Below are positions 30,001-50,583 of a DNA stretch of 64,000 nucleotides, piece after piece. The position numbers and the translations under genes are program-made. Numbering within the stretch: position 1 is the first letter of the stretch; each line of letters starts with the position of its first letter. The stretch comes from Oopsacas minuta (lineage: Eukaryota; Animalia; Porifera): the NCBI GenBank assembly GCA_024704765.1, contig JAKMXF010000222.1, forward strand, positions 496,001 to 560,000, read 5' to 3'. Below the pieces are notes generated by a model, which saw nothing but the letters and a program-made list of their open reading frames with translations, had not been told where the DNA came from and searched no databases.

Positions 30001-33000
30001 TCCTGAATAATGAATCTGAATTAACCAACTCTTAGAATATTTCTTAACCCGCTTAGGGGGTTATCTACAGTATAAGCATCCCTGCTAACCGAAAGTAATA
30101 TGTTTTAAGTCGAGTACTACTCAGCGCTCGGCGCGCCAATAATTGCCATTTCTGTTAATACAGATGGTGGGATAAGATGAATGTCGCACCAATAATTTTT
30201 TGCTTCCTAAGTCCCTAACTGTATAAACTGTAGTGCCATATGCAAGGGGGTTTCGACACCTACTTAATGTCCAATTAATAATTTCTGCATAACGTTGGTA
30301 ATTCCTATACAATTAATTGTCCTAGAGAATACTGAAATCTCCATGAGGCATTCATTATCAATATCTGTTTCCATATACACTTGTTATGAATTACTGAGAA
30401 TTTGTAAATATAATCACAACTAAATACAACAGGTATGGATTGACTCTGTATGGGACATCAACTCTATCTCAGATAATCTCACTGACTAACTCTCCCACAC
30501 AATCCTACTTCAGTACTCCCTCCGATCTAAGCAGTGCTATACAAACACAGAGAAATATTGGTACTAGTTTAGGATCTGGTAGTAGAGATGGCTATGAAGC
30601 AATAGATAAAATTGTGAAGCTATATTCATTCAGATCTGATGTTCAGAAGAAGATCATCTTCTTCTCCAATGAGGTAGGGTAGTGATCATGTGATTTGAAT
30701 TTTCGTGTTTGAGAACCCGAACTTGCCATATGCTGGTTGATATATATCTATATTATTAAATCTCAATGATTGTTTGTTTGTTTGTCTGTTTGTTTGTCCG
30801 TCGTCAAGGACAGGATTTACGGTATCCAATTTAGAGATTGTCGCATAAGTATGTATTTATCGTGTTTATCTAGGAAAGAAATAGAATTCAATAAAACTTC
30901 ACAAGATAAATCGAACATGCTGAATCCGATTTTCACACTTTTGGATTAATCATATGTAATTTTATTGTTGTTTTTATGAATATCGTGTAAACAAATAATC
31001 CAAATCTCAAATATAGCCCCATTATCCTCTTGTGTTGCTGACTTGCGTTACGAAATGTTGAATTTGATTGAAACTATTCATTGCTAATCTTCGAAAAATG
31101 TCGTTTCTTACTTTCCTACCCTTCATTCTTTCTAATTATAAATCTTCACTCTCTTAAAGGTCAGAGAAGTCGCTCCAACATTCAGTAATCTTACCTTTCA
31201 GAGCACAATACAAACTCTGTTAGCAAACAGGATAACACTAAGCACTGTATCAAATGCAGACAACTTCTATTACTTCTATAACAACACAGATAATAGACTT
31301 ATTGGAATGTATTACAATACACGAACAGGAATTGGGAATTTTTCTTCATCTTGTGATCCCACACTAGACAATATAGTTTCCATTCCAAGTGTAGAGTATT
31401 CAATAACCAGAGAGGGAGAGCATAAGGATTATGTTGAGTTAGCTTGGAGAACTGATGGTACTGCTTTCGATCTGAGCTATTTTGAACAATCAAGTGGTTA
31501 TTGTTCAGAACTAGTTGATGCTATCATCCAATATGCAGTAGTACAAAACTTCCCATGCACATTGAATAGTGAGTTATCTTTACTTTTCATATAATTGTTT
31601 TATTCGCACTTAATTATAATATTTTGCTGTCAATTAATTCATATTTTCATTTTCATTTTCATTTTCATTTTCGTGATCAATATAAATGCTTCTGATTGTT
31701 GTTATTATTGTTTGTTCATTACTTTAGTTGTTGACTATGCATTTACTTCTCGTTCTCAATTCCCCGATTACTTTATTTGGGAGAATATTCTGCCTCAGGT
31801 TACGCCAATCTGTTTGGATATGGTGTTCTTATTCGATGTTTCAGTACTCTCTTCGAACTATTTCACAAAACTATTCAATCTAATTAATTATCTCGCAGTC
31901 ACGCCAACCCTTTGTGATCATGTGTAAGTTAGTATTTATTGATTGTATTACTATTTGGAAATGTAGACAAAAATTCAATTATTTTCTAGTTCATACTTCC
32001 TATGAAATATGATTGAAGGAAGTCATTTAAATATTTATGTTTGAACTACGATATATGCTATCTACTTGCAGTAGGAAAATTATGAATATTATTGATAATA
32101 CGCTTAATTCATGTACTGCTAGATCCTCTAGTATTGTTTCGATGCATTTCACTAAACAGAACGAAATATTTTGCATGAGATCAGTGCTATTCGTATTAGT
32201 AAGTGTATATTGTGATAGTTCTCAATTCTGTTGGAAAGTGTATTTCTATTGATTATAGAAATCTTACTTGTTATATGCTAGCATATCGAGTTTAGTATAA
32301 AAATACTGTAATATAGTTAGTTCTGCTATAGAATCAATTTAGTCTTTGATTTATTTATTATATATTTCTAGCTATACTGCCTACTCGTATTCAGATGGCT
32401 ATGATGCTATTGAGTTTATTGTCAATAATCATCCTTTTGAGACAGATTATATCAAATCTATCATAGTTATTACAGAGTTTGTAAGTTATTGAGAATTAAT
32501 TAATAGGAATGTGATTATATTATATTTGTAGAATTTCTTTTGAATCTTAATATACTAATATTTATTTGTGTAGTAATCGCTGAATATTTAATACGTTAGT
32601 GTCACTGTTAGAACGTTGCCAATAATACATTAAAGATTACCTTATCTCTGTTTAGCTTATTCTAGTATCAAATTTGACTTTATTCATATTTTGTCTGATT
32701 AACAACATTCCGCAATTGTACATTTTTCTTGTTTTTAATTGGTATACCCTACCTTGCTGTTCTGAATTAATGAATATACGAATATAATCAGGGCTTCATC
32801 TAGAGTTAGGTAGCCCGAGCACTCTAAGTGTGCATAGATTAAATTTCACGCACCATAATATATATAGCGCAGGCTGCATCCATATAGTGGCCTGCGAATA
32901 TTCCATCTGAAAGATATTCACCTATCATCCTTTTGTATAGGGAAGGAATTCTATATATCCTCAATTCACAAAATCTTCAACTCTTGATTCTCTTCTTTCA

Positions 33001-36000
33001 AATGGAATAATCTTGAGTGTAATTTCGAGTGCTGGTGACTTCTATTACGGTACTTCACCACCTGTCAATATACTAGCTGCTGTCAGAGTCTCTGATACAT
33101 TGATAGGATTCAGGAGCTCTGGAATTAATAATACAATATTAGATGCTATTTCTACAGTTAACTATACTATTACTGATAGCAATATTGATAATGATTATGT
33201 GGATATAGCCTGGCAAACTGGTGGTGTATCCTTTGATATTGATTTGATTACAGAAGATATTTCTCCATTTGCTACACTCATGTTTATATGGGGAAACCCG
33301 GGTGAGTTTTCTTAGAATATCCTGATACTATGTTATTGTTTGAAATTTGGCTCCAGTCCTAATATCTTGGAAAGAACTACATAAATTGAATTATTGTTAG
33401 ATCGAAGTTAGGTTCGGTAGACCTCGGATATGACGTATCACTTCTGGATGATATATTACTTAGCTAGTGTATTTCTTATCCAAATAGGGATTATATAAAT
33501 GAATGGAAGTGAATTTTTGTGATGTAAGTAGTATGTATTGACCGAAGTTAGTCTTATCCGCTTTAGTTCTATTATACTCGTTTCTTAATTCATTAATTAG
33601 TTAATTAACCCGAAGATGCATCTGAGGTATTCGGTAAGATAGAAATCCCACTTTCAGTTTCAATTTCAATTTCAATGAAATTTAATTAACTTTCGATTTC
33701 AAAACTCCCAGGCAATATTCGGATAGTTCATTAATCGGTTAATCCTTCAAATTTGGTTTGAGTGGTTTCAACTTTGATATCTACTAAATAACATTCCCTA
33801 TCTTTCAGCTCCGATTGAGATACTCTCTATGAGTGTGACGTCACAAGGTACCCCCAATGATCCAAGTCCTTATCAGTTTACATGTACAATTAACGACGTA
33901 CCTCATGCTACGCTAACACTGATCATAGATGGAGTTAGTTATGTATCTACTGATACTACTACTATAACACGAGTACTCAGTCTATCAAACTTGATTCCTG
34001 ATATATACGAGTTCTTGTGTATAGCAAGCAATTCTAATGGAGGAGATACTCAGAGGAGTCAGTTCACTATTAAAGGTAAGCAGCTGTATGTATATTAGTG
34101 GCTGTTACTCAATGGCGGATTCAGGTCATAGAGGGTTGATGTGTTCGTAAACTGTCAAATTCTAATTTTCTAATCATTGTCCACCATTTTGCTTACCTTA
34201 TATTTCTAGCCCTGTGCAAATTATATGGTTATTTTTACTTACGCACAGGTAATAATAATGTTTCGCTAAATACAAGTAAAACTTCTGGACATTGGTTTAT
34301 GGTCATGATCGAGTTATGATTTTTTAGTCCTGAGTTCCTGAAATCTTATTTCGAGCATTAAATTTGTTCTGAGGAAAATATTTCTTCAATATGCTTTTCT
34401 TACGTATTTATTTTGGTGTCACTATTTTTGTTTAGGCCTTGCCGAAGGACAATTTATTTGCTCTGGCCATTACCAAATTAGGTCCGGCAGTGGTCTGACC
34501 ATCGCATGGGCTCCTCCCTCCAGTAGATATTATATATTGCATATATCTAATATGTATATTACAAAATTTGGAAATTTCACTCCCATTTTATCACAGGTGT
34601 TCAGAATTCGTTTGGACTATATTGCGCTGCTATTTTCGATTTTGAGTTTGAATCTAAAAATTATTCAAATTATGCAGAATACAATCATTTAATTAGAAAC
34701 TCTTTTTTGCTTTTAGGGCCAATTCCTTCACCGTTCACTCAGTTTGCATTCAAATCAGAATCTGGAGAATCTTGTCATGATTTTGAACCTCTAAACTGTG
34801 TAGATTTGATATTTCTTCTGGATATTAGTGGTCCTATAAACAAATATTTGAATAGAATTGCTGAGTTAGCTGGTAACCTTCCTGAATATTCTCCTGCATG
34901 TGAGAATAGGTATGTACTGCTGAGTAAGATATTATATGATTTTCTGTACAGTAATTACCGCTACTACTTACTATGAAATGAAACCTGAGAGCAATTTTAC
35001 AATTGCTTCAAGATTCTAATTGTATTGTGATTCTTGGCTGATCAGATGATAAATTTGTAATTACCGTATTGTTCTGAATATCTCCGGGGTAGCACTATAC
35101 GAAATTGGAAATAACATTAATTTCTAGACCTGAATAAGCTTTGGGGCGCTTATTCAGGGGAATACAATCTTGATTTAGACATTATACTTATATTCTACAT
35201 TGCTGTATACTCCTGGCTAGCCATTGAAACCAAATCTTGACCATTATTCTGAATTATATTATCTACCAATATTTGTGAAATATGATTGTTAATATTAGAA
35301 ATTTAGAATTGTGTGTGATTTTGGGTATAAAAACTCAACTTGATCTATTTGTTTGTATAAGCAGCATTATTAAGGCTCGTATTTTTATCCACATTTTCAC
35401 TTTAGATACGGGTTGTTGCTGTTTGGAATAATGAATCCTACTGCAATGAATCTGTCTGCTAATTCACTCTACGGCACACCCTCCCAGCTCAAATCTGCCA
35501 TACTAGGCTCTCTCAACATTGCTGACACTTTATCCGTATCTGAAGACGGATACTTTTCTATACACCTGGCTGTTGGATCTTATCCATTCAGAAATGGAGT
35601 GGAGAGGAGACTAGCTCTGTTCGCTAATGAGGTGGGTACATCCTACTCCCTCAAATAAATTTGAAGTTATATAAATAAGAGAGAGCTCCCAAATTAGGGC
35701 GCGGGTACCCAGAATACATGAAAAAATAGCAAATTTAGAGGATATTCCCCTCAAGAATCACTTTAATACTGTCTTGCCCGCTTAAGTATGACATGTCCCT
35801 TACTTCCTACTGTCTCGATTCGATGTTAGACTAAAATAGAACAGTTGTCAAAACTTGTATGCATAAATTTACGACTGTTCATAAAAACAGGCCCAAGTAG
35901 GGCATTATCAACTCATTTTCTAGAATGAACTGGTAGTTACCAAATATGTGAGATAAACGAGTTGACAACACCAATAAATCAGTTGAAATTAGGTTCAGTA

Positions 36001-39000
36001 AATGTAGTAGACCTTCGATATTCTGACAAGGCCATTCTGAAAATTTTCAAATGACCTAATTGTATCCAATTCTACTGCGGACAAATTATTCTACAGTCAA
36101 CTCCAGTTATAGAAAATTTCAGATTTCGGAGTAAAGTTAACGGGATCCGGCCTATGGGACTTCGGAGTCATTAGGTCGAAATTCAGTAAAGCTCTAAACG
36201 GGTACTTTCGGGTAACGGTGATTAATTATGCTAGTGAGAGGATCCTCCAAAAATAAATGGGTCCTCTCCATTTTTGGAGAGACTGCCCACACAAATCCCT
36301 ACAGTATACTACTAGTTTAATAAATGGATGTATTATTGGGATAGCAAGTAAATTTAATTGTATATGACACATTAGTATTATTAAAATAGTCTTCTCTAGT
36401 CTGTTCAACCTTATTCAACATATGAGCACACAATCTCACTTCTGTTCCAGAATGAAATAAAGCTGACTGCATTCACGTACTTCGGAGATATATTCTACTA
36501 TACGGCTTCTACAGAGCTTATCGGAATGAATTTCTTCTCTAATATAGGATTCGGGAATCTATCATCAACTGACACAGATATTAATATTGTACCAAATCCT
36601 TACCTTAAGCTAGATAGTGGAAGCTCTGATGAAAGTTTTGTCAAATTAGCATTCAATACAGATGGCTCTATATTCAATATGAAGTATATGTCCAATGACA
36701 CCACACCTTATTCTCCTGAATTGATTGCAGAACTCTTTGAGTTTGCTGTCATACATGATGTTCCATGCAATTTGGATGGTAAGTGTTGGAATGAGTGAGT
36801 TTTCTGCTTTGAATACTTTGATATTTGCTTCATAATTATGTCTTATGTGTGTATTTTCATTCAAGATTTGAAATTGTCCGAGCTATGCCAAATACTCCTG
36901 TATAATGTATGTCAAAAAGTATATTATTAAGATTATTTACATTCCTGCTATAGATGTTTATTTCAATTTTGAGAATCGTACCCTAACATATTCCTCACCA
37001 TTATACTCTAAATGGATGCACATAACTCCTCAAGTACAGTCAAACTGTGTAGATATGGTATTTCTAGTGGACAGGACTATAACATTCCGACAGTTTATGC
37101 CTGGAGTAATGAGTATAGCTAATAACTTACCAGAGAATGGAAATGGTTGTGTTAATAGGTAGGTTGGGATTTGAATTCAAATTTGTTTTAACCAATATTA
37201 ATGTGACTATATTCATTATTCAAGGAATAGTATTTTGAATTATCACTAAAATGTGTACCTATAATACAAGTATGATTATATCTTAACTTTATGGGCGAAA
37301 TTGAAAATGATCCCAGAAATTAGATTCAAGTCTATCCGTGTGTGAAGAATACCCAGAATTCATATTCTAGTTATTCAGCCGGTGGAACTTATCCACACTC
37401 GAAATAGGATGTAATGACTCAGCTTTAATTTAGTCCTAATGTTAATTAATCTTCTATGTCTAGATATGGTCTAGTAACTTTTGAAACAACTGCGATTATT
37501 ATCAATGTTGGAGTTTCAACTAAATTCGGCACAGCCAATCAGCTGTACAATCAGCTGATTTCTTTCAGTTATAGTGGAGCTACAGAAGATGGATATGTTG
37601 GTATTGATGCAATTGTTAATGAATTTGAATTCAGAGACAGTGATACTATTCAGAAACACATTATACTGTTTGGAGATGAGGTAAGAATGCTTTGTATTTA
37701 TGTATATTCCTCAAGTATTTACTCGTATGATGATACTTGTGTTCTTTAGCCTAGAAGAATCGTCAACTCATCGCTAACTGATACTAGTATACTACAGGCA
37801 TTGGGTGATAACAATATTATACTTACAGTAGCTACTACTGCAGACAATTTCTATCAACTTGATTATACAACTAGGTTGCATGTTGCTGCTCTCATATCTA
37901 ATAGTTATATAGGGTTTGCTTCAAATGGGACTAACCAAGAATATGTAGATGTCTATTCTCCAATTGATTTGTATACTTATTCCAGTAATCAACATGATAG
38001 TTATGTAGCTCTAGCATGGCAGAGTGGAGGACTTGCATTCGACTTGGATTATTTTAGAGATTCTCTCATTAATATGAGGACTGTCGTTACATTATTCAAC
38101 ACACTTATGTTTAGCTGGGGTTCACCAGGTTAGTTGTATTTACCCCCGTTTCCAAATTGTCATTCGCGATATTGGTTTCCCTGCAACCACGTGTCTAGCT
38201 GGGTTTACTCCATCTAATTAGGCATTTGTTTGCAATGGCCTATTGTATTCAGATTAATATGCATGCATATACTTATGTATGTATTTACAACTTATCATAG
38301 TATATCTTTAAGTATAGTTAGCTAAGATAGCCTGAGGATGTTGCATAGAATAAAAGCTGGAATGTCCCACCTTTAATACAATTTTATATGAAATATGATG
38401 GCCAGAAATTTCTGTAGCATTTTCTACACCCTGACTACATCAATGAATTTGTCTTGGGAGGCCTGTCAGACAAACTTATGCAGCCAAAACTGGTTCCATT
38501 TAACAAATTTGGTCTCCTGGACCAGTATTGACAGCTAAAGTTAGAAAAGGTAAAAATTTGGGATTTAGTTACAAAATTGTATGTCCCAGCGTCTTTATAA
38601 GCAATAAAGTTGTCTGAGTAGTTTTAATTAAATTGAAGTGAGAGCTAGCCCATACATGTTGTGTCAGCGTCTTTCTCTGTATTTCCATCATAAGCCAACA
38701 CCAAACTGTAATCAATATTTCAAGTTATTTATTTACATTCACAAACTACCTGTTTCATAACTCCAATATGTGATTATTTGAGTATCACAATTGATTGACA
38801 ATATATTCGACACATAAATATGAATATTATTAAAAATAGTACAACAATCGGATCTAGAGATATTTCTGAAGGCATTTTTAATTTAATCTCCCCTTTAGAT
38901 AATTTACTGACACATATCTTTATATATGGCATTACAGGGCCGTAAGAAGCAAAAAATTATTGGTACGGCGAAGTACATTGTATTGCTGCGGCATTCATCA

Positions 39001-42000
39001 CATCTGACCATTAATTATAATAGAAATTCTGAATAATTGGTGCGGCGAGCGCCGCACTGCTCCTACGGCCCTGCATTAGGATTCAGATCGAGATCCTTTA
39101 CGAGTGATCGATCCATTTGAAAAAGTAGGATTGTGATCGGGATCAAAACTCAAATTTTCTGAAAAATCCAAATTTTTTACAAGTACAGTCAAAACCGGCT
39201 ATTTCTTACACCTGGACTTTAAATTTCTTACTTGATAGTGGTATCAAAACCTAGTATTATATGTAGTGTTTGCAATCACGGGGTGTATTACTAATCCCGT
39301 GATTCAGTATTGACCCGATGCTTAATCCCAGATTGAATATTGCAAGTTATATTATGCTAGCGCGCTTTGCTTGCTAGGATGCTGCGCGACAGCTTGGTGC
39401 TTCAGTTAGGTTAAGTATTAAACAGAAAAGTTTCCTAATGCTTTTGGTCGCTACGCGACGGGATAAACTCAGCAATTCATGCATGGTGTTTTAATATAGC
39501 AGAATTTTTAATATATTATTGTCCATTGTCCATCCAAATTACATTCAATAGCCTTCTGTGGTGACACTGGGAGAATATTCGGATAAGGCATATATCGGTT
39601 AGTGCGTACTATTTTTTGTTCCCCGAGGGGACTGTCTCATCTGAGTTAACTGTAATTGTTTTCATCAAGTATCGTGGTTTTATGTCTTTTTGTGAAATTA
39701 TACTTACCAAGCATTAAATTTACTAGGTAAAAATCCTATCTACGTAGTTAATACGAGTGGCATATCTTTGCAATAAATCAATTTAAGGGATATTTTGAAC
39801 CTCAGTATCTAGTAGTTAATAAGCTGCAGTAATCTCTTGTAAGTGCTTCTGACACCGGTTCATTCGTTTTAAGCGGTATTCCGTTGTAAGTGAAGTCAAA
39901 TCAATTATTTACTAGATATTGGGGGCAAAGAATCATTCGTTATAACTGGAGTTTCGTTATGTCTATCTTTGTTATAACTTAGAACGGAAATTTACTTTAC
40001 TGCGTATTAAGCTACTATTTAACCCTTTACCTGCTCGTCAGTCATCTATGACTGACATACTGAAATCCCCTATTTTATGTTTCAATAGAATGGCCAGTAT
40101 ATATATATATATATATTCATATTCTACCTTATTAGCAGACCATGTGGACAAAGAAATGGCTTGGTAATTTAGTATAAGTCGAGTGAGCTAAGGAGGTCAC
40201 GGGGGTTCGGGATCGCCTTCGCTCATTAAAGAAATAGAATCGCTAAACATCTCTAAGTCTCGAAGACTGCGAGGTGTATATGACTAGTCTGTTGACTAGA
40301 TAACTCATCATCATGAATAGATTTAATCCTTAGGTGAATGGAACAATAACTAATGACAAGATTTTGAAAACATACATTGAATCAAGCAAAATCGAAGAAT
40401 CAATGAAAAATCATCATGGAAAATGCTGTGTAATCATGAATAATGCTGTGTAATCGTGTAAAATGTTGTCTAATTATCAAAGTGTTTCTAAGTCAAAGTT
40501 TAGATCATAATAAGTTGAAAAAACTGTGAATAATGAGTATAGAGGAATTTGAAGTCACGCTAGGACACAAAATATGGCAGAAAATGGCTTATAGCATAGG
40601 CATGGATGGTTTGTTCATGGCTGTTAATTGGTTAAACAGACTTATCAAGTATTAAGGAATAAAATTAGAGAATTTTTTACTGTTGTTTCGTTGTTTTACA
40701 AGTATTTCAAGTAGAGAACGCTAGAAAAATGTATTCAAACTACGTAGTTCCTTTGTTTAGTGGATTATGGATGAATCTTACATGTGAATCTGACTAGGAT
40801 AGTGTCGTAAGAAGCTTGAAATTCCTAAATATATTCAGAAAGCTAGTATTTTTGTACACAACGGCACTGTTCATAAATATGTGCGTTGAGATGTAAGTAC
40901 ACTTGCCCCTACCATACATTAAAGCCGATAAATTGTAAATTACTAGTTTCAAGAGCTTGTAACAATAACAGGCTTCAAAACCTAGCAGAAAGTTAGTTTT
41001 TAGCCTCATAAAGAGGTCTTTTTACTCAGTAAGTTAACTAGAAATACAGACACTTAATCCTTTTTCTAATTTATTTAATTGCTCAGATAGTAAAGATTGT
41101 GGTATTTACATTCATTTTCAATCGGTTTTTTATTACTTTACTTCCATGCAAAGAAATCAACTGTAATATAATAGAAGAGTAAATAGTAATAATTCGATAA
41201 ATATCCCATTTAACAACCAGAATATGCTCCATATAGAAATTATTAAAATGTTCTAGCTCCATGCGCCTATGGAAGTAGGGATGCTCCAGCGCGGAATAGT
41301 ACTTGGGCACCAGTACTTTTAATAACTTCAATAGGCGCATGTGCCTAATACATTTTAGCATATGCCATATACTGCTTTGTTGGATACGTTCCTCACTTCT
41401 TCCATATTAGAATTTATATTGCACTGCAGATGGGACTATGAGACTCTATGACAGTATCTCATTTGTTAAATTTTATCTATTCTGTAGTGGATCTACAAAT
41501 AATTCCCTCTTCATATGAAGCAAACAATCAACTAACTATAGAATGCTCTACTAACGATGTTTCCAATCCATCTATTAGTCTAATTGTTGGAGATCAGCTG
41601 TACTCAAACACAAACTCAAATTCTCTACAAACTACCTTCTCCAGCTGGAATTATTCTACCTACAGTTATATCTGTATAGCTTATAACTCTGTAGGAGGAG
41701 CATCTGACATTGCAACACTTGATATAGAGAGTAAGTGTTCTCAATATTACAATAGACTCTCACATATTCCATACCACAAACTATACAATTGGCAGTATGT
41801 CCAGAGGCATAGACTCGGTGTATGGTTCTGTAGGCCATTGGAGCCATGATAATAGGATTGGTAGGGCCATAGCCTCGTCAACCCTACCGGCGCCTACGCC
41901 CATGATTTTATGTAAGTCTTGGCAGAATTTCCTATGTAACCTTGCATACTCCTGGATGAGCAAAATAACGAAGCAATTAACCATCAATTATAATTCGTTT

Positions 42001-45000
42001 CGATATAGATAAGTTCGTGACAGTTCGTCCTATGCCATCACGGATATGTTATTTACTGTCATCAACAAAATCTTCAATTATCACCAATTCTGGCTGCTTT
42101 GTATTTTAGAGCAAATTGTCCAAATTAATTTATTTCTATCCAGTATAATCTAGTAAATACATACATACACAAGAGGACTGCCAAAATTCGTACTCCTTAT
42201 CAAGAGTAACGTCTTAACCGTGTTCGTATTAACAAAACTCTACTGTATTTATGTTTGTTTACTGTATTTTAGTTCCCAATGGCCTTCCTGTTAACTATAG
42301 TCTCACAGTTCAGAGTTCAGAATCAATACTTGTAGAGTGGGAGCGTTCTGTTGGTAGTAATATAGTACTAATTAGTTACAGAGTCGTTTATCAGGGAATT
42401 TTATTCGATACAATGCAATACACAGCTACTACGACAGATACAGATGTTATTCTGGAGAACTTGAGTCCATTCACAAACTACAGTGTGTATATAATTGCAA
42501 ATACTCCATCTAATAGTAGCCAAACTGATGTGAAAATCGCAACTACATTCCAATACCGTGAGTAATTATTTGCACTAACAGTTTGTACGTACTTCTAAAT
42601 TCAAGTAGTTAGATACAGTGAATGCCCATTATATTATATTACCCACTGAGAGTAGTAATACATGTCTTGTAACCTGCAAAAATATTCATGAATATATGAG
42701 TACCAATTTCCAAAGGATAGTGCTTATATCTGGCCTGTTCTAATATCCTCTGCTCTTATAACCGACATGAACTATATCAGGATTACCAACATAACACAAA
42801 AATCAAATGAATATATTCAACAAATTCTCTCTCCTTAGCTCCTACTGAGTCTCCACAGAATATCACTGCTATACCTGTAAACTCAACTACAATTCTCATA
42901 AACATGTATCCTCCTTCTGTTAACCATCAGAATGGACCCATTAGGAACTATTCAATATCCTATCAACAAGGAGAACAAGAAGTAACAACATTCATTATTC
43001 TTAATACAATGGGAACTTATCCACTTGAAATATCTAGTCAGATTTATGTATCTTCACTTCTACCATTCACCAACTATACTTTTACTATTTTTGCTACTAA
43101 TGATGCTGGTTCTAGTCCTAATGTATCTGTCATAGAAGGAACTAATCCAGCTGGTATGTTTAAATGTGTTTATATTTATGAGACACATTTTGAACCACAT
43201 GATAGACTTTAAATGACCTTATCTATGAGAGCAGTTATAAGATACATATCATATATTATGTTCTTCAATGATTTACACTCTCCTGAGAGTATGTATCTGC
43301 TTTATTTATATAATTCTTCTTGTAGCACCTTCTCAACCTCCTCAGAACATTACAGCTTACTCCAACAGTGCTACTTCTATAACTGTAGCATACTATCCTC
43401 CTCCCTATTTCTATCAGAACGGTATCATCACGAGATATCTCATAACAATACAAGGAACTCCATTTGATTCAGAATTGAAAGAAATATCTGTACCAGTGAA
43501 TTTACCTGTCTATCCATTGTCGGAAGAAGGTAGATATATCTTCACACAACTACACGCTTATAACACATACTCTATTAGAGTTACAGCTGTTAACAGTGTG
43601 GGAGCAGGTCCTACCAGTTCCCCTATTACTGCAACTACACTACAATCAGGTAATTAATTCCCTTAAACAAGATATTTACTGATTATTTTCTCTTAAAATA
43701 CAAAAATTAGTCAGTTTCACTGACACATCAGAAGTGCAACTCAAAGTTCTTTTCCATAAATTTCCTTTTAATAACATTTGTAATTAACCGCTTGGATTAT
43801 TCATTATTTTCCTGGATCTGTGAAATATGATTAATATGCATTAAATTCTTTAGATTGAATTTGTAAATTAAGAATATGGAATATCAACTTTATACTTTAT
43901 ACGTCTGATTACTCTTCTTGCCTTCAAATTTTCGGAATCACTCTAATAGCCTAGAGACATTCTGCTAAGAGTGGCATTTCCCTATTTCGTCTTATTTCTA
44001 TAAATTGCTTATATCAATGGTATTCTATTATTTAGCTCCTACTGAGTCCCCACAGAATGTTACAGCTATTCCTATAAGCTCCACTTCTATTCTCTTAACC
44101 TGTCTTCCTCCTTCTCCCACTCTACAGAATGGACCTATTCGAAACTTTACAATACTCTATTACTCTGAATGGAATTCTGATATCATTGAGACAGCATCAA
44201 TATTGATAGATTCAAGTGAATCCTATCCATTCATGTTGTTAAGTCCAATTGTAATATCTTCACTACAACCATACACCAAATATACATTTAGTATAATTGC
44301 TATTAATGATGCTGGAGAAAGTCCCAATGTTACAGTTACAACCAGAACACGCATAGCAGGTATATAGATATTTGTATTTGTGTTGTTTCCTAACATTGTT
44401 TGATTTCTGAATCTTTCTAGCTCCTACTGAGTCTCCACAGAATATCACTGCTACAACTATAAACTCTACTACAATTCTCATAAACATGTATCCTCCTTCA
44501 GTTAACCATCAGAATGGACTCATTAGAAACTATTCAATATTCTATCAACAAGGAGAACAAGAAATAACATTATTCATTATTCTTAATACAATGGGAACTT
44601 ATCCACTTGAGATATCTAGTCAGATTTATGTATCTTCACTTCTACCATTCACTAACTATACTTTTACTATTATTGCTACTAATGATGCTGGTTCTAGTCC
44701 TAATGTATATATCATGGAAAGAACAAATCCAGCTGGTACGTTTCCCAATTCTCATATGAATTTGTAGTTGGAGTTTGTTATAATTGTCCTTGTAAATAGG
44801 CACTATTTATTACTAAGAATATAATTTATTCATTAAAATTTCTTATCCAGCCCAACCTCGGTAATACGAACACTAATGAATGGTTAAAATTTGTATTGCA
44901 TTATCTGCATTTGGTATTAACTGAAGTTATATCAATTGAATAGCCATTGTAGTGGCTTAAATCAATTTTTGTAAATACTTCGCTGATCGTCTTATCCGAC

Positions 45001-48000
45001 ATTCGTATTAACCGTATACGTATTGTTCTGGTACATATGACCACCCCTGCATGATCGGTCCTTTGGACTAAATGTACAAAACCTATGAAGATTTGGTACT
45101 TGTAGTCCCTCCGTATGTGCCAGAACAGTATTAACGAGGTTCCACTTTACTTATACTAATTAATTATTTAATTTCATTTACAGATTCCGTACCAATCATT
45201 ACATCTCCCCTGTCAGACAAGGTGTTAAATCCTGAGCTTTCCTTAACATACATCGAGCAATTTATCTGTGAAGCTACTGGATATCCTCCCCCTACTATCC
45301 TCTGGTACTCTAATAACGAGCCTGTAACAACTGGAGCTACGCTTACCCTTACTACCAGTAATGTAACTGACGGGAAAGAATACGTTTGTCAAGCTGAAAA
45401 TGATTTGGGATCTGACAGCCGAATAATTATTATCGCCATTGACCCTACTGATATTGCCATTAACAATGTTCTGGATGATATTGCTATTGTCTTGGATAAT
45501 CCATCAGAATTTGATCCAAATCAAGTTGGCCCTATAACAATTTTAATTTCCAATATTCTTCCTAATATTACAGATATTGATATATCAGAAATTGATGGGG
45601 TAAAGGATACATTAGCTAATACAGCTGACATCCTTGATGATCTCTTTGATGTTATTACTGATAATGATACAGCTATTTCACTGGATGATGCAGGTGATAT
45701 AGTTAATACAGCTGGAGACATTATTAACAAAGATTCTGAATTAGAAGATATTTCTATTAACACAGATCTATCAACTCAACAAATTAATATGGTAATTGGT
45801 AAATAATGAATTATCAATCCGCGGCTATTATAGTTAAACTGAAACAGGGATGGTGAAAAAATGCAGTTAACAGCCAATTTTGCTGTTTGCTGTTAACAAC
45901 TACAATTTTCCAAGAAATTAACAATTTGATTTTGCAGTTATTCTAGCTTTTAAACCAACAATTTATTGCCGTTATAGCCTAATTCGAATTGCTAAAAACC
46001 AATTTGAACTCTTAATATAGGTAATATAGTATATAGATAGAGGCAGTAACAAGCAGTTCAAAATTTTTCAAGTTAACCTATGAATTTATATCAACCACCT
46101 ATGTTGGTCTTGTCGAAACCTGAACAACCTGATGGCCTAGAGATATGAGAGTTGAAATTTAAGTTAGCGATAGCTGTTAACACCACGAATGTCCTTTAGC
46201 TGTTTCCCTCTCTGGCTGAAGGGATCAATTAAGTCCTCAAATATATTCAAGAGGACGCAATTTTCATTACAGGAATCAAATTTGTAGATTATCGTGAAAA
46301 ATTTCTCAACGGCAATATTATTTTCATCGATCCCTACTTTTACTCACGTTACTGTATATGTACGTGTAATATTACGTACAAGCATTGTAACATGTTAGCA
46401 CAGTGTATCCGCTTAATATCATACCTATAGGCAAATGTTAATCCCTGTATTCTATAATCTGGGAAGTTTCCCGCCCGGGATAATCTGGGAATCCAATTCG
46501 TATGCGTTGTAGTATGTTAAAGTGCTCAGTACTAACTGGCAATACATGTAGACACATATGCAAACGAGTTTGTTCACACTGTTCAGTTATGCGTGCTACA
46601 CAGTTATATTTCCACGTGTTTCCTTCTAACAGATTTCCACTCTTAACCTTCAAACTTGAATTCAATTATCCGGGAAGGATACCAAGTCTGACCACATTAT
46701 TATGGCAATAACCGAGTTTTTTTATCAATGAAGTAACGAAAATGGTTTTGAATTAGAACTTTTTATGGTAATAAGCTGGTTATCCTATTAAGCGGTATGA
46801 TAATATACGGGATTCATTGTAATAATAGCTCAGGGGCCTAGAAATATTATACGTAGGATACATCTGTTGTTATAGATAGGTTGATTACCTGGCTATTATT
46901 GAGACCCAAGATTAGGACTGTATTTCAGTGGCTAATAGGTAGGCGGTTATGTACGGTTAATCGCTATAGTTTAAATACAATTAGAAATTTTAAATTTCAG
47001 ATCTATTATTGTGGAAGATATCATGTTTATATTTTGTTATCTGTAGGGCGGAATTGCAATTGCTTCAGATGCTTTAGTTATTGCATTACTAACTATTGAA
47101 AAAGTATGCCATAACCTAGGCCTGAATTACTTCAAAGATGCTCTTATTCAGGATACTTTTGTTGTCAATAGGACCCATGTGAATATCTATGGAGCTAATA
47201 TTCCTATCTCTAACCAATTAACTGATGAAACTTTTCCATTAAATGAGAATTCGGAAAATAATATTATTATTCCAGAAAACGTGATAAGAGACCTGGCAGG
47301 TGATCAACTTAGCATGAAAGTAAGTAATACTTTTGATTATTTAATTGAAATTCTATGTTATCAAACTATGCATTACAATACTATTAAATGCAATCAACCT
47401 TACTGCTTTTATGAAAATATGTCAAAAGTCTCGAGATTATATAATAAGAATATCATATCAAAGGAAACTTTTTGGTCTCACCAAATTCGGAATAGCGAGG
47501 GTTGACTGTGTGTATGTGTCTATCTTTCTTCTAGGTTGTCATGGCTATTGTTGGAAAGTACGGAACTAAAGATTCTAATATCCACGAAACTGGTCTCGAG
47601 CAAGATTCTAAAATAGTGACGATAGTTATACCTGGCCGTAACGAGAGTGTATCATTGGTAGAGAATGTATGTTACAATATTATTATTAATTATATTAATT
47701 AACAATATACACATACGACGAAATTTGATTAACGAATAAGTAGGAATTTGACCAAAAATGTAACCCCTTATGAGTAACCGGGCTAATCCAAGAAAATTCT
47801 GTCCACAAATCTAGCATTATTTTATACAACGATGGAACTACATACAGAGTGTGGCTTATCGATCATCCAATAAATGTATGTACTTTATCCTCTATAGCTA
47901 CCCAGAACTTGGACAAATTCCTATTCCAATAGTTTCTTTAATATGGGATTTGGATGAATATTGTGTGTATACAAAAACACTATTCATACCCGAATTTATT

Positions 48001-50583
48001 GTAAAGACAACTCTTATTCTGAATTTATCACTTAGGCTACGATCATTTTCAATTCAGCGTTATCAAACTATTCGACAGATAGGATTGGTACTTATCTTAT
48101 AGGCAATCTGTGGTCTATAAACGGAATTCAAACTATTGATACAGCTATTTCTACCACCAGTCTAGTTGTAGATCATTTCACTAGTTTTGTAGTGTTCGCT
48201 ACTCATAGCATCTCTCCTTCATCTTCTTTACTTCAATACTACCTGGATATTTCTAGTTACATTCTATCTGCTATTTCAGTATTGTGTTTGATATGTTCCT
48301 TGTTTCTGTTCATCTTTGCAGGCAAGAAAGGGTTTTTCAAGATAGAAATAAATATCTTATATTTCAATCTTTGTGTCGCGTTGCTTTTTTCCACTATACT
48401 ATTTGTATTATACGGATTGAAGCCTGATGTGATAGGAATAAGCGATCTTCTATGCAAAATAATGGCAGCTATAATTCATTATTCGTGTATTTTAGTGTTC
48501 GCATGGGCCTTTGCTTTTGCCATTTACATATCTTACAAAATCAAGTTTGGTGAGTTTTAGAAGTTGTTCTTCATTTCTAATAAATTTTACTGAACACATA
48601 TTTCATTATATATTTTCTTCTATAGGAATTAGAAAGAATCGAAAGATCTATCCTTACATTATTATTTTCGCTTGGATTCTTCCTATTGTGTTCCCAGTTG
48701 TAACCTTGGCAATAAAGCTAGATGTGTATGTTGACGTCACAAACCACTGTTTCCCATCTCTCACTGATTATGTTCTTATCGGGTTGCTTGCTCCTGTATT
48801 ATTCATTGCTGCAATAACAATCGTGATGGTCGTCATATTATCAATTGCATTCGTGGTTGTTAGGAAAAAGATAGAAAATGAATTAATTCGAAATGAAATC
48901 AAGCATATACTGTTGTCAACTACTTTAATGACATGTATTCTGACTATCCCATGGTTTACACTGGTAATATTCATTTTCACTGAGAGCCCAGTGATTGAAT
49001 GGACATTTGTACTTCTCAATGATACAGTGGGGATATTCTTCTTCATATTTATTGCATTGAGAATTAAAGAAGTTAGATTACTATTACTTTGCAAATCTCT
49101 GCCAAATGCAAATGAAACTGTAAACCGAGACGGCACGAGGCCCGACACATTTAATAATCCAATTTATGATGGTAATATACAGAATTTACCTGACACTATG
49201 GATGAGATATATGCTGAAGTAGCAGAGAAGTCTGGTTATGGTAGGTTAAATTCACCCACGAATGTTCGAATACCTACAAATTCGAATATTATTATTAAGA
49301 TGCTATTGTATATTTCTAACCATAGTTTTATAAGTAGTAACTGAATACATGTCACAATAAATTGCCTCCACTTAATTCGGACGACAATTCTCTAGGAAAG
49401 GATTTATACCCGATCTCCAGGCTATAGACATGGGCTTTGAAGTTCGGGTTGAGGGACAGACGACCGCAGGCCACTAGTGTTTACTAAACAATAACTACGC
49501 GTATATTAGATCAGTATTATACCATAGACATATTTATGTACCTAAAAGTAAACAAATATTCACAATATGTTGTTTATAATATCATATTCGGGCTCAGCAT
49601 ACTCAATTACCCCAGTATAGTCGTTGAAAGTATGATTCTACCCAAATTTTGAAATTTGTTTACTTTATATTCATAAAAACAACAATAAATTTGCATATGA
49701 TTAATCCAAAAGTGTGAAAATCGGATTCAGCATCTTCGATATATTTAGTGAAGTTTATTGAATTCTATTTACTTCCTTGATAAACACGATAATACATAGT
49801 TATGCGGAAATTTCAAAATTGCATACCGTAAACCCTTTCCTTGACAACGGACAAACAAACAAACAAACAAACAAACAATCATTGAGATTTAATAATATAG
49901 ATAGATACGCTATGGATAATTCAATGTTATTTTATCTTTGGGTATTATTTGCTAAGTATTTGTATTACTTGTATTTTATAAGACTAAGCGATCCACACAG
50001 ATTTTCAATGCTCCAGCATCCTTGGGATTTTATGTTCGACGTCTATAGTACTCTGTAAAGTAAAATTATTTTGTTAATTAGGTTCATAATTAGGATAATC
50101 TGTGCGCAACCACTGTCTCCCCATGAAGCCGTGGATATAATTTAACAAATTTATCACAAGCATGTATATTATATAGAAGTGATGGAGAAGGGAGCATATG
50201 AGAAGGAAGGTGAAAAATCAAAGGAGGCAGCCAGACACTTCAACCCTTATCAGGTTGATCCCTCTGCAAGCCCTTACTCCAATCAGATGTATGAGTCCGA
50301 TCTACCTCCTATATACGACTGCATAGCTGGTTGCCAGACTGGCAACCAAGGAATAAGTAACCCAATGTATGACACTAACCTCACCACTATATCGAATACT
50401 ATACACGAGACATCTACTGGAGGAATCAATAATCCCTTCTATGAATCTACTGCAGTTGAAGGTCATATTGAATGTGATTATGAAGAACTCTCTTATCCTA
50501 ACCCATTTGTTAGTGGAGAAGTTCCCAGTCCTATTCACCCTACTGGTACAAAGCTGGACAAGGAGAATCCAAGCGATGTATAA
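819..50583 (+). CDS. Giant multi-exon adhesion-class GPCR, 5'-partial, about 4,400 aa in window: (vWA-vWA-Ig)x5 - FN3x5 - Ig - GAIN/GPS - 7TM - Tyr-rich tail
   Basis: Hand-built model, all introns GT-AG and all phases compatible. Exons: 819-1044,1153-1558,2057-2252,3810-4014,4707-5094,5742-6008,6177-6375,6703-6928,7170-7554,9091-9286,10838-11045,12218-12611,13338-13598,14035-14233,15287-15518,15601-15988,16815-17010,17467-17680,27609-28017,29174-29446,29645-29849,30433-30673,31160-31568,31728-31923,32372-32480,32941-33301,33809-34075,34717-34909,35406-35631,36400-36778,36954-37158,37464-37680,37750-38128,41488-41730,42273-42557,42839-43153,43326-43649,44036-44359,44421-44735,45184-45791,47047-47319,47535-47666,48036-48549,48626-49240,50177-50583. 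Sum is 13,210 nt = 1 + 4,403 codons including the stop. The first exon starts in phase 2, so upstream exons lie outside the window. That it is one transcript is inferred from continuous phase and absence of internal stops. Confidence 0.85.
2420..3398. mobile_element. Non-autonomous foldback/MITE-like element with about 120-bp imperfect terminal inverted repeats and an internal palindrome
   Basis: 2420-2540 (taagcgcaccaaattt...gccactttgggcacattt) is the inverse of about 3260-3398 (aaatgtgtccaaagcggcac...aaatttggtgcttttt); about 2545-2850 is itself an imperfect inverted repeat. Ends are approximate. Confidence 0.6.
8304..8727 (-). mobile_element. Repeat family R1 (microsatellite-bearing, Helitron-like non-autonomous element), copy a
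   Basis: Shares a roughly 270-bp core (gtttactttatattcataaaaacaac...aaagtgtgaaaatcgg...ttccttgacaacggacaaac(aaac)n...tttaataatat(a/g)gat) with copies at 28340, 30746 (inverted) and 49568. Helitron assignment is inferred from A|TC start and terminal hairpin. Confidence 0.65.
9343..9896. mobile_element. Repeat family R2, TA-flanked CAG...CTG (pogo/Tigger-like) MITE, copy 1
   Basis: TA|CAGGGTAGTCCTCGCC ... GCGAGGCTGCCTG|TA; interior nearly identical to the inverted copy at 18070-18588. Confidence 0.7.
12720..13077. repeat. 13-bp minisatellite GCTAGTTAG(A/G)TAT, about 27.5 copies
   Basis: Counted directly: first unit 12 bp, 26 further full units and a partial; only one position varies. Confidence 0.97.
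16196..16315. mobile_element. Short pogo/Tigger-like MITE
   Basis: Perfect 13-bp TIR CAGTGCAACCTCG / CGAGGTTGCACTG, with TA on both sides. Confidence 0.75.
18070..18588. mobile_element. Repeat family R2 MITE, copy 2 (inverted relative to copy 1)
   Basis: Reverse complement of 9343-9896; explains the duplicated MYSLSYKYYLCEHKW... ORFs at 9541 (+) and 18403 (-). Confidence 0.7.
18682..18980. mobile_element. hAT-type MITE
   Basis: TIR CATAGGCGCCGAA / TTCGGCGCCCATG; 8-bp target duplication GTAAAGTG / GTAAAGTA (7/8). Confidence 0.75.
19658..20488 (+). CDS. Intronless orphan ORF (276 aa from the first ATG) nested in the GPCR intron on the same strand; MGAILS N-terminus
   Basis: 831-nt open frame in AT-rich DNA where random ORFs are short; globular composition; ATG at 19658 (the track starts at TTG 19649). 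No family recognised. Confidence 0.6.
   Translation: MGAILSFFRGMYTRNTLEPMTQMDIDRSLLEPISKGNIIHVGNENGEISEQLPETEQTVKDEDQKLITMYVHNALEKFLPSYDIDPFKDEEGRELYCSPFIAVMEVVKNNCIKLYPDLTGKFLTYSIQPPNYVLHVCINKANSQIVKFAYESTNRTNAGYDLSITAPFHTNNSAEGQPVLCDATYISSVLTGQDPISSILNALSKIHSDGSINNGFDGKDFDWYMDGNNLLNFAVSNSPQMNLFWEDDNLIENLQGSNVKLTGNSAKRVQLALKEV
20672..20849. mobile_element. pogo/Tigger-like MITE
   Basis: TIR CAGTAGAACGTTAGTTATCC vs reverse-complemented right end CAGTAGAACGTCAGTTATCC (19/20); TA on the left. Confidence 0.7.
22300..22834 (+). mobile_element. DINE-1/Helentron-like non-autonomous element
   Basis: (GGAC)n microsatellite near the end, terminal hairpin TTAGAGCA-tcttcagc-TGCTCTAA followed by an A run, three internal copies of G(G/A)TGTGAAAATATGATT(A/T)ATCA. 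Left boundary approximate. Confidence 0.5.
22974..24062 (-). CDS. Intronless multi-pass (about 7 TM) membrane protein nested antisense in the GPCR intron
   Basis: 362-aa ATG-initiated ORF with about seven hydrophobic spans, a basic first loop (RRRYK) and very short N-terminus; no rhodopsin DRY/NPxxY or secretin motifs recognised. Confidence 0.8.
   Translation of the reverse strand: MEGARALEASLIDDLILTVVPLPFCLLTLVLLIYYIRRRYKLYQEVKRVPREFLLLQSYQNYLKNLRIKCVITNFIILILIIEFADNMLFALTLLWVWILSFDLRAVETFGFLFNVGHYMFGIVTTLRLSLVPVLSFMMDFLWFVYMKNQYRYTMMKWIVYIVLRDLYILIASYLIDNGSPRMTLSDAEGYRLQFVCLTELSFAFISIFDFIQLVYYSRKFYLLLKSREKEIKLFYFDKKAYLDSKFIRLHFSIATVLVITALFFLTFGFAANLLMSMAMDSSNILVEWEYYISLGYLSIFGYILRPSLILYKLLINLNYLFICGVIVLKYFGDKKKLSKINEHIKPVMEDYRNSLYNNVKY
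24564..27051 (+). mobile_element. Full-length hAT DNA transposon (2,488 bp)
   Basis: Perfect 15-bp TIR TAGGGTTTTTAATCC / GGATTAAAAACCCTA; perfect 8-bp TSD ATCATGTT (24556-24563 and 27052-27059); clustered subterminal (A/T)TCCCGGGA motifs at both ends. Confidence 0.96.
24940..26833 (+). pseudogene. hAT transposase with BED zinc finger, broken by two frameshifts
   Basis: IWNHF...CNSC...STKGLHNHL...H (BED), LTLDEWTS, ITTDG (in the shifted frame just before 25629), CYAH, TRWSS, PATSVEAERAFS (hATC). Frameshifts near 25570 and 26265. Confidence 0.93.
28340..28730 (-). mobile_element. Repeat family R1, copy b
   Basis: Same core as copy a; (GACA)n; ACGAGCC-TTT-GGCTCGT hairpin at the left end. Confidence 0.65.
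29645..34075 (+). other. Ectodomain unit 4: vWA-7 + degenerate vWA-8 + Ig-like 4
   Basis: Same exon series, but the middle exon of vWA-8 is only 109 nt (32372-32480, YTAYSYSDGYDAIEFIVNNHPFETDYIKSIIVITEF). Ig has FTC...YEFLCIASN. Confidence 0.72.
30746..31010 (+). mobile_element. Repeat family R1, copy c (opposite orientation)
   Basis: Begins atctatattattaaatctcaatgattgtttg(tttg)n...; reverse complement of the core in copies a, b, d. Right end approximate. Confidence 0.65.
34717..41730 (+). other. Ectodomain unit 5: vWA-9 + vWA-10 + Ig-like 5
   Basis: Same exon series; YVALAWQSGG motif; Ig exon 41488-41730 has IECST...YSYICIAYN. Confidence 0.8.
38935..39073. mobile_element. Short CAGGGCCG-type MITE; related fragments at about 290-395, 22185-22225 and 30121-30215 (inverted)
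   Basis: TIR CAGGGCCGTAAGAAGCA vs CAGGGCCGTAGGAGCA; flanked by direct repeat CATTA; shared GCGAGCGCCGCAC and AAAAAATTATTGGT motifs among copies. Confidence 0.6.
42273..44735 (+). other. Five tandem fibronectin type III domains, one per phase-1 exon
   Basis: Each exon has AP..PP.N.T...S.....W/Y..P....G....Y......L.P.T.Y...V.A.N..G.S hallmarks; lengths 285, 315, 324, 324, 315 nt, all multiples of 3. Confidence 0.9.
45184..48200 (+). other. Membrane-proximal Ig domain followed by GAIN-like domain ending in a GPS-like motif
   Basis: FICEATGYPPPTILWY...YVCQAEN (I-set Ig), then an acidic helical segment, then beta-rich exons ...SKIVTIVI...LVEN|ATIIF...WSINGIQ...VVDHFTSFVVF immediately before TM1. 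Confidence 0.75.
48036..49240 (+). other. Secretin/adhesion-family seven-transmembrane region (2 exons, 76-nt intron 48550-48625)
   Basis: Seven hydrophobic spans with class-B2 signatures: NLCVALL (TM2), CKIMAAIIHY..L.FAW (TM3), AWILP (TM4), ECL2 Cys, ILTIPW (TM6), F.LLND..GIFFF...KEVR (TM7/helix 8). Confidence 0.9.
49568..49902 (-). mobile_element. Repeat family R1, copy d
   Basis: Same core and (AAAC)n; shares the ccagtatagtcgttgaaagtatgattctacc segment with copy a. Confidence 0.65.
50177..50583 (+). other. Last exon: cytoplasmic tail with NPxY/YxxPhi motifs and C-terminal PSDV
   Basis: Phase-1 join GGT TAT G|gtaggt...atatag|AA GTG ATG gives ...SGYEVMEK...; reads to TAA at 50583. Confidence 0.75.

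Follow-up and report, generated by a model that had tools for sequence, protein, structure and literature searches.

A cysteine-free GPS segment in front of TM1 of an expressed sponge adhesion GPCR

The window, by which is meant the whole stretch of 64,000 nucleotides analysed here, carries an expressed adhesion GPCR gene in which all four canonical cysteine positions of the GPS are occupied by other residues, while the cleavage-site His and Thr and a Stachel-like strand are kept. The host is probably a hexactinellid (glass) sponge. The explanation that we favour, and regard as rather probable from the sequence, is that this is the juxtamembrane end of a GAIN domain that descends from an ancestor with one disulfide, would cleave itself between F48 and T49, and would hold its agonist strand non-covalently.

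Gene architecture, splicing and expression

All features of the gene lie on the + strand. The most likely order, as read from domain matches, is five fibronectin type III (FN3) domains, one Ig domain, a helical and β GAIN region of about 300 residues, and 7tm_2. The ectodomain is modular, with no fewer than five FN3 domains and one Ig domain (Pfam and local BLAST). The five FN3 exons occupy 42233 to 44764 (Pfam fn3, E 2.5e-8 to 1.9e-14), in open stretches with approximate boundaries at 42233-42562, 42811-43209, 43241-43654, 43969-44364 and 44411-44764. The exon at 45184-45791, with an acceptor AG that ends at 45183, encodes the Ig domain (Pfam Ig_3, E 4.5e-10) and then four helices resembling GAIN subdomain A. 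An AlphaFold2 model of 45186-45791 (pLDDT 82) has strands within residues 4-85 and helices at 89-104, 111-124, 133-159 and 166-201; pLDDT is about 80 over the helices after the Ig domain, which are as expected for subdomain A. When the model was searched with Foldseek, only the Ig part was matched.

Two exons complete the predicted GAIN region. The first (47047-47319) would contain the last of the helical part together with the opening strands of subdomain B, and the second (47535-47666) the strand region QDSxI(I/V)T(I/V)V. They give weak collinear matches to GAIN HMM positions 141-211 and 241-258 respectively, the first not significant alone in a reverse search and the second not significant either. 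Both exons are conserved, the first being 38-65% identical to a paralogue and two foreign relatives described below. A complete GAIN fold is a prediction for this gene.

The following exon (48036-48549) encodes the cysteine-free GPS, the Stachel-like strand and TM1-TM3, and the next (48626-49240, donor at 49241) TM4-TM7 followed by the beginning of the cytoplasmic tail. A tail exon at 50177-50583 encodes the C-terminal cytoplasmic region, with the frame open as far as 50580. Pfam 7tm_2 (PF00002) matches the two 7TM exons at 23.8 and 25.3 bits against a cut-off of 20.6, and the best PDB sequence matches of 48036-48549 are ADGRL3, ADGRD1, ADGRG6 and ADGRE5. These matches identify the gene product as an adhesion GPCR of class B2 type.

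Splicing was examined in sequencing run X4, which has no record as RNA and is called RNA-like from its depth. Over the gene, exon bins have a depth of approximately 600-3400, compared to 17-19 in intron bins, and X4 therefore behaves like RNA. The original prediction had asked for the junction 47666>48036 to be confirmed, and a GT..AG joint is indeed present there in X4 contigs, as it is at 45791>47047 and 48549>48626. Each joint is seen in one contig, with a shorter side of 26-29 letters, slightly below the 31-letter rule of the tool. The junctions 47319>47535 and 49240>50177 are represented by loose ends: one at 47321 reads into 47537, and one at 49240 corresponds, in phase, to the sequence from 50177 on. 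The same exon boundaries are kept in the paralogue and the two foreign relatives. The gene is expressed and spliced.

The cysteine-free GPS segment

Translation of 48036-48215 reproduces exactly the string quoted in the original prediction. Residues are numbered from A1, the codon at 48036. The exon includes LWSINGI and, further on, SLVVDHF/TSFVVFATHS (the slash marking the predicted scissile bond, between 48179 and 48180), then TM1-TM3, and H47-F48-T49 lies 19 residues upstream of the start of TM1. The GPS-like segment G18 to F48 spans 48087-48179. In it, C1 is replaced by G18 (48087-48089), C2 by I31 (G30-I31 at 48123-48128 standing in place of Gly-Cys), C3 by L43 (48162-48164, position -6 from T+1) and C4 by V45 (48168-48170, position -4). 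The segment retains Y20 (48093-48095) as the aromatic residue at S10.49, W26-S27-x-x-G30 (W26 at 48111-48113), H47 at -2 (48174-48176) and F48 at -1 (48177-48179). The putative tethered-agonist strand TSFVVFATHS follows at 48180-48209, with T49 as putative nucleophile at +1, F51 at +3, and F54.

The register is supported by several alignments. With phmmer against the PDB, residues 24-164 align with the ADGRL3 GAIN-7TM chain 8jmt (E 6e-9 overall), pairing W, S, G, H and F with their identical counterparts, I, L and V each with Cys, and F48 with Leu. When a profile of four related cysteine-free sequences was compared by hhalign with a 46-sequence GAIN alignment, the match had a probability of 95% and E 3.6e-8, and placed G18 on C1. 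A reverse HMM search matched the GPS of four-cysteine and two-cysteine relatives at -26 to +11 around the His. Pfam GPS (PF01825) gives no match on 48036-48233 at E up to 10; its gathering cut-off is 22.5 bits, and it scores 19.5 bits on paralogue L002, 23-43 bits on two-cysteine paralogues, and nothing on L034, an unrelated gene discussed below. The prediction that all four canonical positions are non-cysteine thus agrees with the translation and with both the ADGRL3 and GAIN alignments, and a genuine, expressed GPS and Stachel segment lies right before TM1 of an adhesion GPCR, as had been proposed.

Between the Ig domain and TM1 there is a single cysteine, in exon 47047-47319 (KVCHN). An intradomain disulfide is therefore impossible.

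Relatives and genome baseline

The exon structure recurs in a paralogue 97 kb away (C222:446968-447480), which also has a cysteine-free GPS, with 41-71% identity per exon and a dN/dS against the window gene of 0.2-0.5. Two more cysteine-free relatives of the same architecture were found on foreign metagenome (ENA) contigs, 760 kb and 1.27 Mb long. In a tree, the four sequences group together with 100/100 support, inside a set of two-cysteine paralogues. They are 45-52% identical in the GPS segment, and G18, L21, L25, W26, I31, T33, H47, F48, T49, F51 and F54 are invariant, so that the predicted retention of H(-2), T(+1) and F(+3) extends to all four. The aromatic residue at S10.49 is Y, F, Y and F, and the residue before S12.50 is G, G, G and V, the Val belonging to L036. 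At the former cysteine positions, C1 is invariably Gly, C2 is Ile, C3 is Leu or Ile and C4 is Val or Ile, suggesting that hydrophobic packing replaces the disulfide staples. The cysteine-free state is conserved and under constraint.

Across the genome surveyed (61.46 Mb, 365 contigs), about 28 of the 42 GPS places have C1 and C3 only, and a few have four cysteines. The same C1 and C3 pattern is present in 33 of the readable GPS among 102 library relatives. The original prediction is right that all four cysteines are absent, but its baseline needs correcting: a single C1-C3 disulfide is already the norm in most adhesion GPCRs of this genome, so that the loss in the window gene amounts to one further disulfide and not to two at once. 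GPS variants that lack the cleavage motif also occur: L048 lacks the His, and L060 lacks HxT.

Cysteine loss has also occurred independently. The unrelated HormR-GAIN-7TM gene L034 (L034:1586-4564, minus strand) has a cysteine-free GPS reading VEVTHL/TSFAAILG, and a short ectodomain. A model of its HormR-GAIN region (pLDDT 82.6, pTM 0.82) matches the HormR-GAIN structures of CELSR1, BAI3, CL1 and BAI2 with E 1e-14 to 1e-15 and TM 0.6-0.69, and by this model the domain is confidently a GAIN fold. The AlphaFold2 alignment consisted mostly of cysteine-bearing GAIN domains, and the model says nothing on disulfide-free stability.

Predicted cleavage, putative tethered agonism and known systems

The favoured history is as follows. 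The lineage would first have had the one-disulfide C1-C3 GPS, and the last cysteine pair would have been lost before the four related sequences split, with hydrophobic packing in place of the staples. The residues known to drive cis-autoproteolysis are all kept under purifying selection: His as the base, Thr as the nucleophile, an aromatic residue at C1+2 that orients the His, and the Gly before C2. The T-S-F-x-V/I-F motif, the hydrophobic core of the putative agonist, is likewise retained. The GAIN domain would then cleave itself between F48 and T49, keep its last strand non-covalently and, once the N-terminal fragment is pulled or displaced, expose this strand as an agonist. Because the cleavage residues and the agonist core are kept, an ordinary adhesion GPCR is the most likely working model.

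Self-cleavage is plausible from the residues present. The aromatic residue at S10.49 stacks on the His and, together with the Gly before S12.50, separates cleaving from non-cleaving human receptors (PMC13062082). In the alignment, the window gene has all the sequence determinants of this scheme: the His base and Thr, Y20 at S10.49, and G30 before S12.50. Polycystin-1 has a GPS with one disulfide, C3015-C3043, and is cleaved at HL/T3049 (PMC4810088). Polycystin-1 thus shows that cleavage can proceed without the C2-C4 disulfide. Polycystin-1 is an 11-TM protein that keeps C1-C3, whereas the window gene encodes a 7TM receptor in which this pair is also absent. The further proposal, that both GPS disulfides are dispensable, so that a natural GAIN domain without them is still autoproteolytic and still presents its tethered agonist, has in our estimate a little under an even chance.

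The closest likeness is to the latrophilin type (CL1, 4dlq; ADGRL3, 8jmt and 8vti), in which the GPS is likewise directly before TM1 of 7tm_2. Common to both are W-S-x-x-G, the His base, the Thr, an aromatic residue at C1+2, and a T-x-F-x-V-hydrophobic strand. The window gene differs in having Phe and not Leu at -1, and Leu and not Trp at S10.50. The Stachel consensus TxFAVLM has T or S at +1, F at +3 and hydrophobic residues at +6 and +7; T49, F51 and F54 are present and invariant, while +7 is a small residue, Ala (T, A or S in relatives), and not Met. Both disulfides of CL1, C801-C832 and C820-C834 (Arac 2012), are absent. There is no HormR domain, unlike in the latrophilin type; FN3 and Ig domains precede the GAIN region instead.

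A folded GAIN domain that does not cleave is the strongest alternative, with a smaller yet substantial probability. With no disulfide, the turn would be too little strained for the N-O acyl shift; signalling, if any, would proceed without fragment separation, and H, T and F would be kept as a buried strand and turn. In published structures two disulfides hold the strained β-turn required for cleavage (Arac 2012; PMC4810088), although polycystin-1 cleaves with one (PMC4810088). ADGRB2 has HLS and is essentially uncleaved (PMC13062082). The HxS/T motif is therefore not sufficient for cleavage, and conservation of H and T could be structural. The comparison with ADGRB2/BAI2 (8oek), whose motif sits in a GAIN fold, is however a reversed one: BAI2 has both disulfides but lacks the S10.49 aromatic residue and the Gly, while the window gene has no disulfides but both of these extra determinants of cleaving human receptors. 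Replacement of the S10.50 Trp by Leu and the missing Gly in L036 would fit a non-cleaving domain, as would the existence of non-cleavable GPS variants in this genome (L048, L060); but in those family members cleavage has been given up together with the His, whereas neither His nor Thr varies among the four related GPS segments, which otherwise differ at about half of their positions.

The original prediction also offered a mechanical reading, in which disulfide loss would be adaptive: less force would free the Stachel, in keeping with a very long ectodomain. Disulfides generally stiffen small β structures, and the ectodomain does carry five or more FN3 domains and an Ig domain, but this idea is unsupported and improbable. 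The four cysteine positions all come before the scissile bond and belong to the N-terminal fragment, where they staple fragment strands and a kinked loop (Arac 2012); none bonds the Stachel. In engineered ADGRG1 GAIN domains, the rupture force rose, fell or stayed the same when disulfides were added, and Tm was not predictive. The cysteine-free L034 has a short ectodomain, and the trait is therefore not tied to a long lever.

It is very improbable that the gene model is an artefact, with other exons or another frame supplying the cysteines, or that it is a decaying pseudogene: Pfam GPS does not match the segment, an annotated full-length protein was not found in the representative library and no sequencing run is recorded as RNA, but there are three direct GT..AG joints, a depth in X4 that is 30 to 100 times higher over exons than over introns, consistent phases across six exons, no stops in any exon, and an exon set shared with the paralogue and both foreign contigs, with dN/dS in the range of constraint given above.

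If the further proposal, that both disulfides are dispensable for a GAIN domain that still cleaves itself and presents its agonist, is true, a single sponge genome would offer a natural series of GPS with 4, 2, 1 and 0 cysteines, in which one could measure how far the cysteines matter for cleavage itself, for thermal stability and for the force of release. In Amphimedon queenslandica, 12 of 40 adhesion GPCRs are reported to be without a GPS (PMC4302439). The window gene and L034 resemble these cases, being sponge 7tm_2 receptors in which Pfam GPS finds nothing; unlike in the reported Amphimedon cases, the GPS of the window gene is present but missed by a cysteine-weighted model. Some of the 'GPS-less' adhesion GPCRs of early-branching animals would then be failures of detection.

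Structure and splicing of the GPS exon

The window is AT-rich (33-39% G+C) and the adhesion GPCR gene is a multi-exon gene on the forward strand. The exon at 48036-48549, which encodes the GPS, the putative Stachel and TM1-TM3, has AG just before it and GTGAGT just after it, and the reading frame resumes in phase at 48626, where the TM4-TM7 exon (48626-49240) begins. The upstream exons at 45184-45791 (the Ig exon), 47047-47319 (B1) and 47535-47666 (B2) have canonical GT/AG borders and phase 0. Translation of 48036-48215 reproduced exactly the GPS string of the original prediction. Numbering from A1 at 48036, the scissile bond would lie between F48 and T49.

Pfam finds 7tm_2 above cut-off on both 7TM exons, Ig_3 on 45135-45803 and fn3 on five upstream exons, and its GPS model gives no match on the exon at 48036-48549. 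A phmmer search against all PDB chains aligned exon residues 24-164 with a GAIN-7TM construct of ADGRL3 (8jmt, E 6e-9), placing W26, S27, G30, H47 and F51 on their counterparts and I31, L43 and V45 on the second, third and fourth cysteines. The profile of the GPS stretch, made from four related sequences, matched a 46-sequence GAIN alignment (probability 95%, E 3.6e-8) with G18 on the first cysteine, and the reverse HMM search recovered, in register, the GPS of numerous relatives that have cysteines there. In the published structure of CL1 the disulfides pair C1 with C3 and C2 with C4 (C801-C832 and C820-C834). The window gene has one cysteine in total between the Ig domain and TM1, in the motif KVCHN of exon 47047-47319, and therefore an intradomain disulfide is impossible.

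Four public sequencing runs hold this stretch, none of them on record as RNA; one, X4, was judged RNA-like from its depth pattern and joints alone. Its depth is about 600-3400 in exon bins versus 17-19 in intron bins. The predicted junction from 47666 to 48036 was seen as a GT..AG joint in the X4 contigs, as were those from 45791 to 47047 and from 48549 to 48626, each in one contig with a shorter side of 26-29 letters, slightly below the method's rule of thumb. Loose ends in X4 bridge 47319 to 47535 and 49240 to 50177. Because the three joints fall at exactly phase-consistent sites and the depth contrast is present, a chance origin is unlikely. No support was found for other exons that would bring in the cysteines; a mis-spliced gene or pseudogene was rejected.

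The splice of the tail intron (49241-50176), which splits the cytoplasmic tail (49120-50583), was also checked. Single-base differences between runs of one sample at 45598, 45696 and 48744-48973, some of which have roughly half the depth in X4, look like allelic variation, and three of the four runs have an extra A after 45800, in an intron. Elsewhere in the window, repeated open stretches with common motifs (…LSVV(S/T)…IG(F/M)…) occupy 1153-41846 of the forward strand, for example at 31142-31591, 32941-33312, 36400-36795, 37750-38130 and 41442-41846; Pfam gave no family at E up to 0.01 on six of them. Amid these modules, three adjoining open stretches of 189-244 aa at 24940-26830 (forward strand), the first with a BED zinc finger (PF02892, E 2.7e-8), look like the remnant of a hAT-type transposase.

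Distribution of GPS cysteines and origin of the cysteine-free clade

The whole assembly (61,460,524 bases in 365 contigs) was searched with the exon and with the Pfam GPS model, and the matches were read, giving 42 places. Cysteine classes were assigned by reading the sequences, as the automatic tree labels wrongly call some two-cysteine sequences '123-'. Four canonical cysteines are present at 4 of the 42 places (L037, L039, L047 and L060), C1 and C3 alone at about 28, C3 alone at three, and no cysteine at three; the remaining few are unreadable. The three without any are the window gene, L002/L013 (its paralogue, 97 kb away and on the other strand) and the unrelated gene L034. The four-cysteine motifs, found in the Pfam-seeded genome search, rule out that the C2-C4 pair is absent from all adhesion GPCRs of the genome. 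A search of 1.84 billion representative proteins yielded 102 relatives: four cysteines occur in 39 of them and two in 33, and only P0001 and P0002 are cysteine-free. For the window gene itself, the representative proteins returned exon-sized ORFs and no full-length annotated protein, and a scan of JGI metagenomes with the exon profile gave no match.

In the three adhesion GPCR paralogues with C3 (-6) as the sole GPS cysteine, L010 (G000:C111:1871733-1872206, forward), L011 (C111:1911752-1912207, reverse) and L018 (C166:431291-431758, reverse), a new cysteine appears about 13 residues past the cleavage site (...VECTTIHL|STFAILVSTASKCEKP). If C3 pairs with it, the N- and C-terminal fragments would be covalently joined even after cleavage. 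L048 (G000:C288:91243-91359, reverse) reads CIASQGTSF, with no catalytic His, and L060 (C299:106721-106822, forward) reads VVCSCRGVG, with no H-x-T; both are likely to be non-cleaving members.

Exon for exon, the paralogue matches the window gene in structure, at 41-71% identity; on its GAIN exons dN/dS is 0.2-0.5. P0001 and P0002 come from long metagenome contigs in ENA (1.27 Mb and 760 kb, G+C 34-36%), with an fn3, Ig, GAIN-exon and 7TM layout like that of the window gene and a GPS that is likewise free of cysteine. In the four-way alignment, identity across the GPS stretch is 45-52%, and G18, L21, L25, W26, I31, T33, H47, F48, T49, F51 and F54 are invariant. In the relative L036 (6474-7034 of an ENA ERZ25072740 contig), the TM4-7 exon aligns by tblastn with a single in-frame stop (ITIAA*FQVY); possible causes are an additional intron, an error, or decay of this copy.

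The window gene, its paralogue, P0001 and P0002 group as a 100/100 clade in a tree built from the GPS-TM1-3 exon. This clade is part of a wider group with ultrafast bootstrap 90 and SH-aLRT 82, otherwise made up of two-cysteine paralogues, and L034 belongs to the second main branch. Loss of the last disulfide therefore happened once at the root of the clade, and independently in L034. The claim that all four positions are non-cysteine holds, but the loss amounts to one disulfide rather than two when the gene's own lineage is the reference.

Predicted GAIN fold and cleavage competence

About 300 residues separate the Ig domain from the scissile bond, which is the size of a GAIN domain. The model of the Ig exon has an Ig domain followed by four helices (pLDDT ~80), as would be expected for GAIN subdomain A; Foldseek with this model matched Ig domains only and is uninformative for subdomain A. 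The four exons are collinear on the GAIN HMM (positions 43-119, 141-211, 241-258 and 288-321), with a strong match for the last only. The two middle exons are collinear but very weak against the HMM of 46 relatives (10.2 and 0.5 bits; hhalign probability 10.6% and 0.6%), and reverse HMM searches with their four-sequence profiles gave nothing significant. Against the whole genome the B1 profile matched only the window gene and its paralogue, and an ESM Atlas feature search with B1 gave no usable match. A complex prediction with the four GAIN exon pieces as separate chains and the GPS piece as partner scored 0.02, with alignments unused, and speaks neither for nor against the domain.

L034 (G000:C321, L034:1586-4564, reverse strand) is a single open frame of 992 aa with a HormR-GAIN-7TM architecture and the GPS VEVTHL|TSFAAILG. 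Its residues 1-372 gave a confident AF2 model with pLDDT 82.6 and pTM 0.82, whose best PDB matches are the HormR-GAIN regions of CELSR1, BAI3, CL1, BAI2 and ADGRL3 (E 1e-14 to 1e-15, TM 0.6-0.69). A GAIN fold is thus predicted in this genome for a gene without GPS cysteines, with the caveat that the model was built on an alignment mostly of cysteine-bearing domains.

The H-x-S/T motif is insufficient for cleavage (PMC13062082). Receptors that cleave carry in addition an aromatic side chain at S10.49 (F in C-x-F-W) stacked on the His, a Gly immediately ahead of the C2 cysteine, and suitable flaps. In the window gene the two residues are Y20 and G30, and across the four relatives they are Y/F/Y/F and G/G/G/V. 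Phe at -1 is usual in this family, as many two-cysteine paralogues read HF|T. Judged on the sequence criteria known so far, the domain seems able to cleave. The alternative is a non-cleaving GAIN, favoured by the replacement of Trp S10.50 by Leu and by the role that structural work assigns to the disulfides, namely to hold the strained turn that enables self-cleavage. On balance, we give self-cleavage in the window gene a somewhat better than even chance. In the putative Stachel, T49, F51 and F54 fit the T-x-F-x-x-L core and +7 is a small residue in place of the Met of the TxFAVLM pattern; the local family consensus is T-S-F-A-V-F-V.

Release force, detection and significance

It had been proposed that a GAIN without disulfides might release its agonist at lower force, in keeping with a very long ectodomain lever. 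No evidence for this proposal emerged, and several points weigh against it. All four cysteine positions are N-terminal to the scissile bond and tie strands of the NTF, not the Stachel. In one data set, disulfides engineered into ADGRG1 had no uniform effect on the rupture force of the Stachel, which was higher, lower or unchanged, and melting temperature was no predictor of it. L034, equally cysteine-free, has a short ectodomain.

Pfam GPS scores are 23-43 bits for the two-cysteine paralogues and 19.5 bits (below cut-off) for the cysteine-free paralogue, and the model gives nothing for the window gene or L034. In a survey of Amphimedon that relied on Pfam, 12 of 40 adhesion GPCRs were reported to lack a GPS (PMC4302439); by analogy, some of these absences may be of the cysteine-free kind. 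Because the Pfam GPS model misses such forms, censuses of sponge adhesion GPCRs may undercount GPS motifs and GAIN domains.

According to a review, two highly conserved disulfide bridges adjoin the cleavage site (PMC13197933), and every human adhesion GPCR has one of them in its GAIN domain (PMC13062082). In polycystin-1 one of the two GPS disulfides is dispensable, whereas in the clade of the window gene neither is present. A search of the open-access literature found no paper describing a cysteine-free GPS. A conserved and expressed cysteine-free clade, with every other determinant of cleavage intact, is a natural experiment on the need for the disulfides, for which the paralogues with four, two, one and no cysteines in one genome are matched controls.
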